Below are positions 26,383 to 29,234 of a stretch of DNA of 64,000 nucleotides, piece by piece (the first letter of the stretch is position 1; the number at the start of each line of letters is the position of its first letter). The notes under the pieces are model-generated. The model was not told where the DNA came from. It made no database searches and was given only the letters and a program-made list of their open reading frames with translations. The translations under genes and the position numbers were made by a program. The stretch lies in the sequence record OP889247.1. One strand, given 5' to 3'.

Positions 26383-26456
26383 GTTATCTTTCCTTCTAAT
26401 TAGGTTACTTTTAGGAAGTTACAAAAGATCAAAATCCCCGTAGAACAAACATAATC

Positions 26457-26486
26457 CTCTACCTTCCCAATTAAGGGAAGGTAGAG
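26457..26486. terminator. terminator-like hairpin bounding the ncRNA locus
   Basis: 12-bp stem CTCTACCTTCCC/GGGAAGGTAGAG. Confidence 0.7.
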
Positions 26487-26489
26487 TAA

Positions 26490-27335
26490 ACTTATCTGTA
26501 GTTAACATCAAAGTTAAATGTGTGAGAATACACATTCCATAAGGTTATCAATCTTCCATACCGAGTGTTTCGGTAAATGGTATTCAAGATAACCCTACAG
26601 GTCGTGCATTTTACTACACCACTTCTACCCGACGAAAGGTAGCATACAGTTTGCTCTGTTAGCCCTAGTCGTCTAGTAAAAAGATCTAGTCTTTATACTC
26701 TAGGTCACTAACGTCTGCGCTGTCTAAAACACCGACCATACCCGCAGGTACAGAGTGTCGGAACTCACTGTTAGGGCGTTCCTAAATAGCGAACAAGTCA
26801 GATCTAAATTGACCTGAGTCGTTCTGGACATCTTTGTTTCATGTCGCGGTCTTACTTCGACTATAACTTTCAGACTTATTTGTCGCTTAAACGACATTAC
26901 GTTTCGTCTGAAAGGTAACACCTCTTTGTTTTACGTCCTGAGGTTTCTATTTGGGACGATCCCGCCACGTAGGGATTTGGACGTCTCTTAACTGTTTGAA
27001 TGCACCGTTAGGATAAAGGAGACATGCTGACCGAGCATTATAACAACGGGAAACAATTAAGAGACTACTAGGACGATCACTACTTTTGAATTAACAGACA
27101 TTGGGTAAGTGAGGACTTTTGCAATTGGTTCTGTGAATTTCTAAGTAGTGACCGAAAGGTTGAACTATCAGTTGCCCGCTCCACTTAACGCAAATGGTTA
27201 ATTAGAAACCTGATAGTTCGTAAAGGGTTAGTTATCCATGAGAGTTTTAACTTTTCCGTTAGGCTTTGAGTTTCAACAATTTGTGATAGAGCATGAAGCA
27301 ACGGGAGGTCTAAAATCAAACATAAATAACTAAGA
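26490..27335 (-). ncRNA. candidate large ornate structured ncRNA (~850 nt)
   Basis: No credible ORF; many abutting 8-15 bp helices; most non-Watson-Crick pairs are G.U only on the minus strand; lies directly 3' of tRNA-Leu. Confidence 0.6.
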
Positions 27336-27337
27336 TG

Positions 27338-27421
27338 TGGTCTCCGAGGACGGGATCGAACCGTCACGCCATAGGCGAGGGATTTTAAATCCCTTGTGTC
27401 TACCAATTTCACCACTCGGAG
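27338..27421 (-). tRNA. tRNA-Leu(UAA)
   Basis: Full cloverleaf, long variable arm, AGGGA-UUUAAAA-UCCCU anticodon arm, encoded CCA. Confidence 0.95.
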
Positions 27422-27502
27422 TGGTAATAAGGATTATTGGATTCGAACCAATTCAATCTCTCTAATGGTGAGAGCGAGTTACCACCTAACTCTGCAATCC
27501 TT
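27422..27502 (-). tRNA. atypical or degenerate tRNA-like gene, CAU in the anticodon loop
   Basis: AAGGATT/AATCCTT acceptor; ATTGG-TTCGAAT-CCAAT T arm; CTCTC-ACCATTA-GAGAG arm lacking U33 and purine 37; extra bases before CCA. Confidence 0.6.
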
Positions 27503-27509
27503 AAAGGGG

Positions 27510-27643
27510 TTAGATCTTTCTCTTTGTCGTCATGAAAACCAGCAGGTCTCATATTGTTTATTTGTCTCGGTCACTTCAATTCGAGTCGAAGTGTAATTTG
27601 TCGGACAAATGTTAGATGGACAAGTTTCTTGAGAAAGATCTAA
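27510..27643 (-). ncRNA. structured inter-tRNA module closed by a 13-bp stem
   Basis: TTAGATCTTTCTC at 27510..27522 pairs perfectly with 27631..27643; internal hairpins. Confidence 0.45.
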
Positions 27644-27645
27644 AA

Positions 27646-27721
27646 TGGTGAGTCTTGTTGGGTATGATCCAACGACCGCCGAGTTATGAGCTCGGAGCTC
27701 TAACCGCTGAGCTAAAGACCC
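27646..27721 (-). tRNA. tRNA with CAU anticodon (Met or lysidine Ile2)
   Basis: 76-nt cloverleaf, CUCAUAA loop, CCA; unusual T loop AUCAUAC. Confidence 0.9.
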
Positions 27722-27728
27722 TGTAAAA

Positions 27729-27805
27729 TGGTGAGCTCGGTGCGACTTGAACGCACGACAGGAAGCTTAGAAGGCTTCTATTCTATCCAACTGAATTACG
27801 AGCTC
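27729..27805 (-). tRNA. tRNA-Arg(UCU)
   Basis: 77-nt canonical cloverleaf, CUUCUAA loop, CCA. Confidence 0.95.
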
Positions 27806-27811
27806 TGAATA

Positions 27812-27930
27812 GGTGGGTAGGAACAAATCCTACCCGACATGTATTACTTCGTTCTATCCCCAAGGTGCGCAAATGTCCGACCCGGTTTAGGGTTGAAATT
27901 ATCAAGTGGTAGATTCGGAAGTAATAATGT
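27812..27930 (-). ncRNA. structured module: long stem domain plus a 3' 7-bp hairpin
   Basis: TATTACTTC/GAAGTAATA long-range stem; GGGTAGG/CCTACCC hairpin. Confidence 0.4.
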
Positions 27931-27946
27931 TCTTTGAAATAGGGGC

Positions 27947-28027
27947 GAGATGCTAGACCGGACTTTATACCGGCATCTCCTGGTGGTAAGTTCACCAAGC
28001 GACTTCTGTTCAGTCTACTAACATCTC
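27947..28027 (-). ncRNA. non-canonical cloverleaf (tRNA-like) element
   Basis: 10-bp acceptor-like, 4-bp D-like, 7-bp anticodon-like and 5-bp T-like stems in tRNA order; no TTC, no CCA. Confidence 0.55.
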
Positions 28028-28105
28028 TAAGTCGAGTAACTAGATTAACTATTTACGTCTACTATACTTCAACATAATATAAACATTATGTTTATTAAAT
28101 AAAAA

Positions 28106-28136
28106 TACTCCTAGTTAGTTGGAGTAACTAGGAGTA
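28106..28136. terminator. terminator-like hairpin
   Basis: 11-bp stem TACTCCTAGTT/AACTAGGAGTA. Confidence 0.6.
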
Positions 28137-28745
28137 AAACAAAAACGCATGGAAGCATTTTTGAACGGCTCATTACTTTTTAATTAACTCTTAGTAAAAA
28201 CTAATTAAAAAGTAGGTGTTAACTTAACACCTACAAAAATAAAGCCTACAGGAAATAGAACAAAACAATGAAAAAGAAAACGCAAACCAACGCACGAAGA
28301 ACCCCGAGTTCTTCCTTAAGAACACTTTGATAAATATCCTTAAGGAAGAGAAGATGTAGGGATCATCTTCTCCGGGATAACAAGCGCCTAAACGTACTGA
28401 AAGCAAGGGATTACTTTCTTAATAGTAACTCATTGGAATTAACATTAAGAAAGCCACAGATACCTAGGAGGAGGACGTGCCTGTGACCTTTTATTACGGA
28501 GGTTTTGAAATGCAAGAAGTCAACTGTTAGCGGCAGCCTGAACTTCTTTAAGTTCACTTAATTGAAATAAACTTAAAGAAATAAGGTAACAAATAATATA
28601 ATTCATTACCTTAAACCAAACCGGTATAAATACATCATTGAGGATCCGATCATGAAAAACTTCCGCTGACAACAGGTTAAGGTTTTTCTTTCACATATAA
28701 TAAATACAACGTTGTAAATAAATAAAAAATATTTAAGTCCCATAA

Positions 28746-28770
28746 TTTTTGAGATAGATATTATTTTAAT
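28746..28770 (+). promoter_or_regulatory. early-type promoter variant opening the accessory region
   Basis: TTTTTGAGATA-GATATTAT. Confidence 0.55.
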
Positions 28771-28820
28771 GATAAACTAGTGAGGTTTAATTTTAACCTT
28801 GAGTGTAGAGAGGGTGGTTT

Positions 28821-29234
28821 ATGAGACTATTTGGTTGTGAGGAAAAAGTAAGTGGGAGAGATCGGCAAGTTTTCGTGTTTAAGGATTTTGTTATTAAACT
28901 TCCTAGAACTGAAAGCTGGTTGTCGTTCGTAAGAGGTCTGTGTTCTAACTTAAAGGAAATCGAAACGGTAAGGTCTTACGGTGGATTATTTCCTGAGCAA
29001 GTTATGGAAATCAAGTGGTCTGGTTTGTTTGGAATAATCTTGGTAGCTAAACGTTATCGGGAAGTGAAAGACACAACTGTACATCGTCGCAGATTCTTTT
29101 ATCACTTAAGGAGACTTCATGGGATGGAACTTTACAAGTGGAACTTTATCTGGGAAGATGATGTTAAAGTTTTCAACTACGGGTGGGATAAATACGGTCG
29201 GTTAGTGAAACTAGATTTAGGTATAAATTATTAA
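28821..29234 (+). CDS. minimal protein-kinase-like protein
   Basis: G..R.VF...FVIKLP (beta-3 Lys), helix-C Glu, D.K..N catalytic loop, KLDLG (DFG-like). Confidence 0.6.
   Translation: MRLFGCEEKVSGRDRQVFVFKDFVIKLPRTESWLSFVRGLCSNLKEIETVRSYGGLFPEQVMEIKWSGLFGIILVAKRYREVKDTTVHRRRFFYHLRRLHGMELYKWNFIWEDDVKVFNYGWDKYGRLVKLDLGINY

Follow-up and report, generated by a model that had tools for sequence, protein, structure and literature searches.

The tRNA cluster of phage T4 is protein-poor and lies on one strand; besides eight transfer RNAs (tRNAs), it encodes a homing endonuclease (segB) and two small stable RNAs, rnaC (species 1) and rnaD (species 2). It is transcribed into precursors that RNase P and further RNases of the host process. 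We know of no function that has been assigned to rnaC or rnaD in T4. Large, highly structured non-coding RNAs are rare, and to our knowledge almost none has a known function. Two of them, GOLLD and ROOL, are borne by phages and, according to recent work, assemble into cages made of RNA only. In the excerpts of PMC12286853, GOLLD is described as a phage-encoded RNA of >800 nucleotides (nt) next to tRNA islands, the 3′ region of which is conserved and the 5′ region variable; it was first seen downstream of tRNA-Met. Here, we analyze an RNA cluster on the minus strand of Aeromonas phage AVP1 (OP889247.1), a jumbo phage of 234 kb and a member of the genus Ferozepurvirus, that combines tRNAs, small structured modules, and a large structured RNA directly upstream of a gene for a DUF7484 protein.

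The window that was analyzed is a 64,000-nt stretch of this genome. The RNA cluster extends from 28083 to 26457 and is protein-free; there is no convincing open reading frame (ORF), and the longest ORF within 26383-28220 has 76 amino acids (aa). A preliminary description had proposed that tRNAs alternate in it with two atypical cloverleaves (here modules A and D), a stem domain (B), and a module closed by 13 base pairs (bp; C), followed by a structured RNA of ~850 nt and a terminator, with a promoter-like sequence near 28073-28082. The tRNA calls, folds, and a terminator scan recovered all elements at these positions on the minus strand (Table 1). The four modules all fold as proposed, three of them far better than shuffled sequences, and the large RNA (27337-26457) was measured at 881 nt. 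Its minimum free energy is -269.8 kcal/mol, compared with -209 +/- 7 kcal/mol for shuffled sequences (z -8.75). The cluster probably represents an RNA-only transcription unit of a jumbo phage, i.e. a precursor with tRNAs, tRNA-like RNAs, small RNAs, and a large RNA that belongs to a modular family. The preliminary description had called this kind of system undescribed, which is too far-reaching, because the T4 cluster, with its tRNAs, homing endonuclease, and small RNAs, is a precedent for the layout.

Table 1. Features of the AVP1 RNA cluster and its borders, ordered from the 5′ side of the minus strand
Feature	Position	Strand	Basis and remarks
Three terminator-like hairpins	28234-28212, 28163-28140, 28136-28106	-	Scan; bound the unit on the 5′ side
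Promoter-like TTTATATTATG (core TATATTATG)	28073-28083	-	Exact sequence, in front of the RNA cluster; putative function
Module A, tRNA-Lys(CUU)-like non-canonical cloverleaf	27947-28027	-	Fold z -5.33
Module B, 94-nt multi-stem domain with 13-bp closing stem, plus 8-bp hairpin before tRNA-Arg	27812-27930	-	Fold z -3.87
tRNA-Arg(UCU)	27729-27805	-	ARAGORN; Rfam 62.9 bits
tRNA with anticodon CAU (Met or Ile2)	27646-27721	-	ARAGORN; Rfam 60.3 bits
Module C, 134-nt RNA, 12-13-bp closing stem around three hairpins	27510-27643	-	Fold z -5.35
Module D, tRNA-like cloverleaf	27422-27505	-	Fold z -2.63
tRNA-Leu(UAA)	27338-27421	-	ARAGORN; Rfam 53.6 bits
Large RNA, 5′ domain, Ferozepurvirus-type only	26983-27337	-	Part of the 881-nt fold; outer helices show compensatory changes; 27099-26983 almost invariant
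Large RNA, putative hammerhead-module remnant: P0 hairpin with GUGG loop, pseudoknot helix CGUCC/GGACG, A-rich loop UAAAACAAA	26912-26982	-	Best match of model R1
Large RNA, central hairpins including CCUUUCAGAC-GAAAC...GUCUGAAAG and invariant GUAAGACC	26779-26911	-	Alifold helices
Large RNA, 3′ domain, common to OBP-type phages	26525-26778	-	Match of covariance model R2
Intrinsic-terminator-like 12-bp hairpin, then U-rich GAUUAUGUUUG	26457-26486	-	Scan; position kept and covarying in both RNA types
DUF7484 protein gene	26382-25531	-	First gene after the RNA cluster; followed by genes for a 491-aa protein and thymidylate kinase

The dense arrangement on one strand, the plausible phage promoter in front, and the one strong terminator at the end make a single precursor that is cut at the tRNAs the natural reading. 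The terminator scan found 7 terminator-like hairpins in the region (1.9 expected), and it revealed no strong conserved terminator between the promoter-like site and the final hairpin. In the window, TATATTA[CT] is ~6-fold enriched within 120 nt upstream of ORFs. The TTTATATTATG site belongs to a stretch that is almost invariant among the four relatives; no variable site at all occurs in 28160-28101. In L007-L009 and AH04, where a protein gene parts the large RNA from the tRNAs, this RNA likewise has the core TATATTATG at its 5′ edge. Transcription would thus probably start at the TATATTATG site and end at the hairpin 26486-26457. The precursor would most likely be cut by host RNase P at the 5′ ends of the tRNAs and by 3′ endo- and exonucleases at the CCA ends. 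The expected products are three tRNAs, the tRNA-like RNAs A and D, the small stable RNAs B and C, and one RNA of ~880 nt, the 5′ end of which would be the 3′ side of tRNA-Leu.

ARAGORN and Rfam agreed on exactly three canonical tRNAs, and CCA is encoded in each of them. Rfam searches of the whole window and of the region (gathering threshold, E<=10) yielded these three tRNAs and, besides them, only antisense-tRNA artefacts (Plastid-ycf2). The T-loop of the CAU tRNA is AUCAUAC (A54, U58), which is unusual in comparison with UUCRANY.

The cluster is shared by four sequenced relatives (ACP1, pAEv1810, PS1, and PS2, with PS1 and PS2 identical over the region) and by five metagenome contigs. Modules A, B, and C are 95-100% identical among the relatives, compared with third-codon identities of 64-84% in the flanking genes. 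The preliminary description had interpreted the spacers as structured; the folds, the conservation above the synonymous background, and the compensatory changes indicate that the non-tRNA modules are selected RNAs and not junk. The pairing of module A is kept by changes in its acceptor stem and in its T-arm, where CCGG/CCGG is replaced by CUAG/CUAG in ACP1. Module C has compensatory changes in ACP1 and PS1, e.g. from UUUGUC/GACAAA to UUUACC/GGUAAA. Aeromonas phage CF8 has a diverged copy among its clustered tRNA genes (L017 3237-3368; nhmmer E 1.2e-5), and in the alignment that includes this copy 9 of the 37 predicted pairs show a compensatory change, while the loop GACUCGAAUU is invariant. 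Module C is a conserved small-RNA family of its own. Module B (119 nt in total) is nearly invariant, with one substitution and a loop indel among four isolate genomes; it is therefore conserved, but it offers no covariation test of its structure. Module B and T4 rnaD (L023 2554-2672) have AAACCGGGUCG (11 nt, 27888-27878) and GCGCACC (27870-27864) in common, in the same order; the E value of 0.005 is valid only within a two-sequence database, and the match may be due to chance.

HNH endonuclease genes interrupt the RNA cluster in PS1/PS2 (L004 3625-4128) and in pAEv1810 (L003 4908-5960). The former lies between tRNA-Arg and tRNA-CAU; the latter is on the opposite strand, in place of the terminator and the final ~70 nt of the large RNA. 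Both insertions recall segB within the T4 tRNA cluster.

Modules A and D resemble tRNAs, but depart from the canonical form with its 7-bp acceptor stem and U33, and in the case of A also from the UUCRANY-type T-loop and CCA. Module A has a 10-bp acceptor-like stem, the loop AACUUAC (A33), the non-consensus T-loop UAUAAAGU, and no CCA. Module D has an 8-bp stem, the loop ACCAUUA (CAU with C33), and a canonical T-arm (AUUGG-UUCGAAU-CCAAU), and its 3′ UUACCA directly abuts base 1 of tRNA-Leu. Its fold is the weakest of the four and only marginally better than those of shuffled sequences, 3 of 200 of which fold as well. Neither module was called by ARAGORN at default settings or matched RF00005 at E<=10 (threshold 29 bits). 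With relaxed settings, ARAGORN called D as 'Asn-AUU' (-ps), while A was called, as Lys-CUU, only with -ps80.

These features could point to an anti-defence role as put forward in the preliminary description, in which A (CUU) and D (CAU) would be decoys or resistant substitutes against anticodon nucleases and the large RNA a sponge or scaffold. Both modules deviate from tRNA rules exactly at the anticodon loop, with A33 and C33 instead of U33, and module A is kept in all AVP1-type genomes. Anticodon nucleases often target tRNA-Lys, which also fits module A. According to a review of jumbo phages, phage tRNAs might serve to prevent the cleavage of tRNAs by RNases of the host or to reverse it (PMC13282480). 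However, module D is found in AVP1 and pAEv1810 only, with ACP1 and PS1 lacking it, and is thus dispensable; B, C, and the large RNA have no likeness to tRNAs; and no defence-related gene was seen among the neighbouring genes that were inspected. We regard an anti-defence role as possible but unlikely.

The large RNA has relatives outside of the genus, which is the main finding beyond the preliminary description. Starting from the DUF7484 gene, searches first identified Pseudomonas phage OBP and three IMG/VR contigs; further DUF7484 loci were then found in SXP01, N1M2, Yubaba, Kc263, Survivor, AH04, and pEt-SU. The synteny comprises 15 or more phages and consists of a tRNA island, a gap of ~0.75-1.1 kb, the DUF7484 gene, a gene for a virion protein of ~490 aa, and thymidylate kinase. 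In the relatives, the gap is unannotated or contains only small or dubious coding sequences (CDS); it is conserved and ends in a covarying terminator. The DUF7484 protein is labelled a virion structural protein in other records, and homologues of it occur in jumbo phages of the OBP and EL types. For all members of the large-RNA family, the tRNA island is on one side and the DUF7484 virion gene on the other. The comparison of these loci shows a modular predicted architecture, i.e. a variable 5′ domain, a pseudoknotted type-I hammerhead, and in most members a 3′ domain of 250-350 nt after it. In three phages (SXP01, Survivor, and pEt-SU) this 3′ domain is missing, and the hammerhead is found just before the terminator.

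Within the AVP1-type phages, 28 of the 232 predicted pairs of the large RNA show compensatory changes among four sequences. The stretch 27099-26850 is almost invariant, including the first part of the central region (26911-26850), whereas 26849-26779 is more variable. The octamer GUAAGACC (in AVP1 GTAAGACC, 26855-26848) precedes a hairpin and does not vary in either RNA type; it lies in the middle of the AVP1 RNA, compared with ~100 nt from the 5′ end of the OBP-type RNAs (L006-L018).

A comparison of the AVP1 RNA with the OBP-type loci by blastn yielded nothing. A profile of the OBP-type RNAs matched the AVP1-type loci with E values of 1e-7 to 1e-11. These scores were, however, largely due to the terminator and the syntenic DNA downstream of it, and a covariance model of the 3′ domain was therefore built instead. 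This model, R2, is based on a trimmed alignment of only eight OBP-type 3′ domains and leaves out hammerhead and terminator; its E values are rough. R2 has a full-length match in AVP1 (26783-26525; 35.0 bits, E 1.3e-7), and it also matches ACP1 (37.9 bits, E 2.3e-8) and PS1 (31.1 bits, E 1.3e-6). The next unrelated match has an E value of 0.06. A joint MAFFT alignment of the 3′ domains has 35 consensus pairs, 21-22 of them with compensatory changes. Of the alignment cells, 96% are paired, compared with 34-47% when the partners are slid; none of 500 shuffles came up to the observed value. The parts of the domain are a hairpin with the invariant loop GCCyUAACnGUGA on a freely covarying stem, a junction CAAACnGU-hairpin-AAGUnGU, and a long terminal hairpin, the internal loops of which are conserved. 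We conclude from model and alignment that the predicted 3′ domains of the AVP1-type and OBP-type large RNAs are homologous.

The RNA profiles did not match D6, EL, Aphrodite1, or metagenome loci with 38-43% DUF7484 identity, and an exact 23-mer of the AVP1 large-RNA core had no match in IMG/VR. EL is a more distant relative, which has a gene for the tubulin PhuZ at its DUF7484 locus. The phiKp_32 locus that was available ends 575 nt upstream of the DUF7484 gene. In CF8 (L017 3459-3960), a shorter ORF-poor stretch of ~480 nt follows tRNA-Ile2 at the same locus; it carries the junction UAAACAGUCCG-hairpin-AAGUUGUG and the same type of terminator, and it may be a third, reduced variant of the large-RNA family. 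The Rfam model of the ribosomal protein L10 leader weakly matches the 3′ domain of Yubaba (L012 3726-3886; 26.3 bits, gathering threshold 44, E 0.052); this match is driven by ACCGUAGACAG...CUGAG and the terminator. The string GUAGACAGCC is invariant in the OBP-type RNAs, with AUGCACGACC in AVP1, and may be a K-turn-like or protein-binding site. A small glutaredoxin/thioredoxin gene lies in or just after the tRNA island in L004, L011-L016, and L018; it is absent in AVP1, ACP1, and pAEv1810.

All 12 OBP-type sequences contain a complete type-I hammerhead core (CUGA[CUA]GA, GAAAC, CCGUC). The order is stem I, CUGAnGA, stem II, GAAAC, a long stem III, CCGUC with the cleavage site, and the return strand of stem I. 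All three stems covary, stem I with e.g. CAU/AUG, CAG/CUG, CUAU/AUAG, and CACC/GGUG, and stem II with GUCC/GGAC, GUCUG/CAGAC, and others. Loop II forms a predicted pseudoknot of 4-6 bp with the sequence 5′ of stem I, and this also covaries, because six different pairings occur. Pseudoknots stabilize natural hammerheads of all three types, and phage contexts have been described (PMC3088659). The OBP-type hammerheads agree with the type I hammerheads with a pseudoknot of stem I and loop II (Perreault et al. 2011, PMC3088659) in CUGAnGA, GAAA, the pair A15.1-U16.1, and C17, but they differ in their long stem III (~40 nt) and their location in the middle or at the 3′ end of a structured RNA of ~1 kb. 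The hammerhead, and not a tRNA, is the likely punctuation between the domains in the OBP-type phages and probably cuts them apart; the 5′ domain would then end with a 2′,3′-cyclic phosphate, and the 3′ domain would start with a 5′-OH.

A search for the hammerhead pattern in species genomes gave 10 matches, which is about the number expected by chance; these were associated neither with an Rfam family nor with GOLLD or tRNA arrays. A hammerhead-like core (CUGACGAGUCC...GGACGAAAC...CCGUC) was observed in the IMG/VR contig 3300045136_000538 (L025 8844-8953), which is GC-rich (70%), viral, and unrelated; neither RNA profile matches this contig at E<=1e-3.

In AVP1 the catalytic core is gone, and its large RNA is therefore not counted as a hammerhead member. 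CUGAnGA is absent from the large RNAs of AVP1, ACP1, and pAEv1810, and Rfam ribozyme and hammerhead models have no match in the AVP1 large RNA at E<=10. A string GACGAAAC...GUC is found near the collinear site, but in a different hairpin context. At this collinear site, each AVP1-type locus has its best match to a model of the hammerhead module (R1), with 14.4 bits and E 0.015 in AVP1, 17.1 bits and E 0.0024 in PS1, and E 0.044 in ACP1. The alignment in AVP1 deletes 51 model positions, i.e. the 3′ strand of stem II, GAAAC, stem III, and the cleavage site. We read 26982-26912 as a putative hammerhead remnant without catalytic competence; the score is marginal, and the reading draws its weight from the position. 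Because the core is lost and the 5′ domain is different, the AVP1 large RNA probably remains intact or is cleaved in some other way.

The stretch could also be explained by decay of a tRNA island, in which case the modules would be pseudogenes or homing scars and the long RNA a cis-acting leader, attenuator, or spacer for the DUF7484 operon. The tRNA content indeed differs between close relatives (tRNA-Asn is found only in pAEv1810, and tRNA-Arg is missing in ACP1), HNH genes have entered the clusters of PS1 and pAEv1810, module D is present or absent depending on the genome, and the large RNA ends only 75 nt before the DUF7484 start codon. Decay is, however, difficult to reconcile with conservation far above the synonymous background, with changes that are compensatory, and with an RNA family that persists across genera in which DUF7484 is only 64-73% identical. 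A strong terminator separates the RNA from DUF7484, and it is followed by a conserved AT-rich stretch that could hold DUF7484's own promoter; for this reason, a role as a cis-leader of DUF7484 is unlikely. A leader of ~1 kb with a ribozyme would, in addition, be unprecedented. Taken as a whole, we consider the decay scenario improbable.

Conservation at the protein level, caused by hidden small genes, has even less in its favor and is hardly credible. CDS are annotated in homologous stretches, and ORFs of 65-76 aa exist. The annotated ORFs, however, vary in place and strand from genome to genome, one of them overlaps a tRNA gene and another a terminator, and the most conserved 250 nt are kept at all positions, without a 3-nt period. 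The covarying helices and the complete hammerhead of the relatives are likewise not expected for protein genes. The GenBank CDS AVP1_0151 (39 aa, 26419-26535), N1M2_252 (L011 2874-3386), and Kc263 QYN80068 (L013 3527-3718) lie within the structured RNA or over the terminator, and these small CDS are probably spurious.

Is the large RNA a member of a named family? A very divergent GOLLD or ROOL, i.e. a representative of the ornate, cage-forming RNAs, would fit the setting described in the excerpts of PMC12286853, as the RNA is located directly downstream of a tRNA (Met or Leu), is 0.8-1.1 kb long, and has a conserved 3′ and a variable 5′ part. The comparison was made by model and by description: the GOLLD (RF01998) and ROOL models of Rfam 15 did not match the AVP1 or Yubaba RNA at E<=10, even when these were searched alone with lax filters, nor did they match the OBP-type loci, and the excerpts of PMC12286853 do not mention a hammerhead for GOLLD. 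Membership in these families therefore seems quite unlikely to us. The isolated large RNA also had no match at E<=10 to RNase P, transfer-messenger RNA, group I/II introns, or any other family of Rfam 15. A reading as an RNase P-like RNA had been considered on the basis of the motifs AGAGCAAAC, AAAGUCC, and ACAGAACC, which recall M1 RNA. E. coli rnpB shares only the 9-mer AGAGCAAAC, and nhmmer profiles of both RNA types found nothing in it; as both Rfam and nhmmer matches to rnpB were lacking, this reading was dropped. A literature search, which included a 2026 review on jumbo phages and was incomplete in its coverage, found no jumbo-phage hammerhead and no large RNA of this kind. The large RNA appears to be a new, undescribed family with an unusual modular build.

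Several observations weigh against an RNA-only precursor with a large RNA of one common family. The promoter is a short AT-rich motif, the 11-mer TTTATATTATG is not over-represented, and a sigma-70 promoter scan of the region showed no excess compared with shuffled sequences. The large RNA could have a start of its own at GUUAUUUAUG, directly after tRNA-Leu, and it contains a weak terminator-like hairpin (26753-26736), the U-run of which is, however, not kept in PS1. Without the terminator and the downstream DNA, nhmmer comparisons between the two RNA types yield E values of only 1.7-7, so the link of the 3′ domains is based on the covariance model and shared motifs, and not on sequence alone. 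The AVP1 5′ domain has no relative outside of the genus that is detectable with nhmmer sequence profiles, neither among the OBP-type 5′ domains nor at any other locus. The R1 matches of the remnant are marginal (E 0.002-0.04, with rough calibration). Rfam hammerhead models remain below threshold even on the relatives: the best value is 23.7 bits for Hammerhead_1 (L007), compared with a threshold of 34 bits, and there was no match in three other OBP-type loci at E<=1 or in a set of seven loci at E<=5. The long stem III is the likely reason for these low scores.

Upstream of the cluster, ~600 nt (28220-28820) are unannotated in GenBank, contain only ORFs of 45-60 aa, and are ~93% identical in the relatives. 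This stretch, which ends in the three minus-strand terminator-like hairpins, could hold small genes or more RNAs. Beyond it, hypothetical genes on the plus strand start at 28821 and are thus divergent to the cluster, in contrast to the block of minus-strand genes downstream.

The context suggests that the large RNA might be a stable, trans-acting folded RNA of the infection that is tied to tRNAs or translation; this view is favored because the setting most resembles those of GOLLD and ROOL. More tentatively, the OBP-like jumbo phages might possess a new class of RNAs with exchangeable domains and two unrelated 5′ types, which together with B and C could form an RNA-only takeover arm that acts on tRNAs or the ribosome, or an RNA-only particle. 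A further family would widen the small set of GOLLD and ROOL. Its hosts are jumbo phages of Pseudomonas, Erwinia, Serratia, Klebsiella, and Aeromonas that can be cultured and are genetically tractable, and the contrasts within the family, i.e. presence or absence of the hammerhead, presence or absence of the 3′ domain, and two different 5′ domains, represent natural experiments. A hammerhead in bacterial viruses would gain a concrete and testable role, the cutting of a composite non-coding RNA into parts. About 1.7 kb of seemingly empty or mis-annotated DNA, including dubious small CDS, should be annotated as RNA genes.

Compared with the known systems, the AVP1 cluster resembles that of T4 in that structured non-tRNA RNAs of ~120-140 nt (119-139 nt in T4) are encoded on the same strand together with phage tRNAs. 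In AVP1, modules are found also between the tRNAs, whereas in T4 they occur only after them and are not accompanied by an RNA of ~0.9 kb. The similarity of the AVP1 modules to rnaC and rnaD comprises only identities of 7-11 nt, e.g. AAACCGGGUCG in B and rnaD and a T-loop match of D and rnaC, and the folds differ. With GOLLD and ROOL, as presented in the excerpts of PMC12286853, the large RNA shares that it is phage-encoded, often located by tRNA islands, 0.6-0.8 kb or more in length, and heavily structured. The features of the GOLLD setting given there are also found for the AVP1- and OBP-type RNAs, which is a resemblance of setting and not a proof of membership. In contrast to GOLLD and ROOL, the RNAs described here belong to jumbo phages of Gammaproteobacteria, and the relatives of the AVP1 RNA have an embedded hammerhead.

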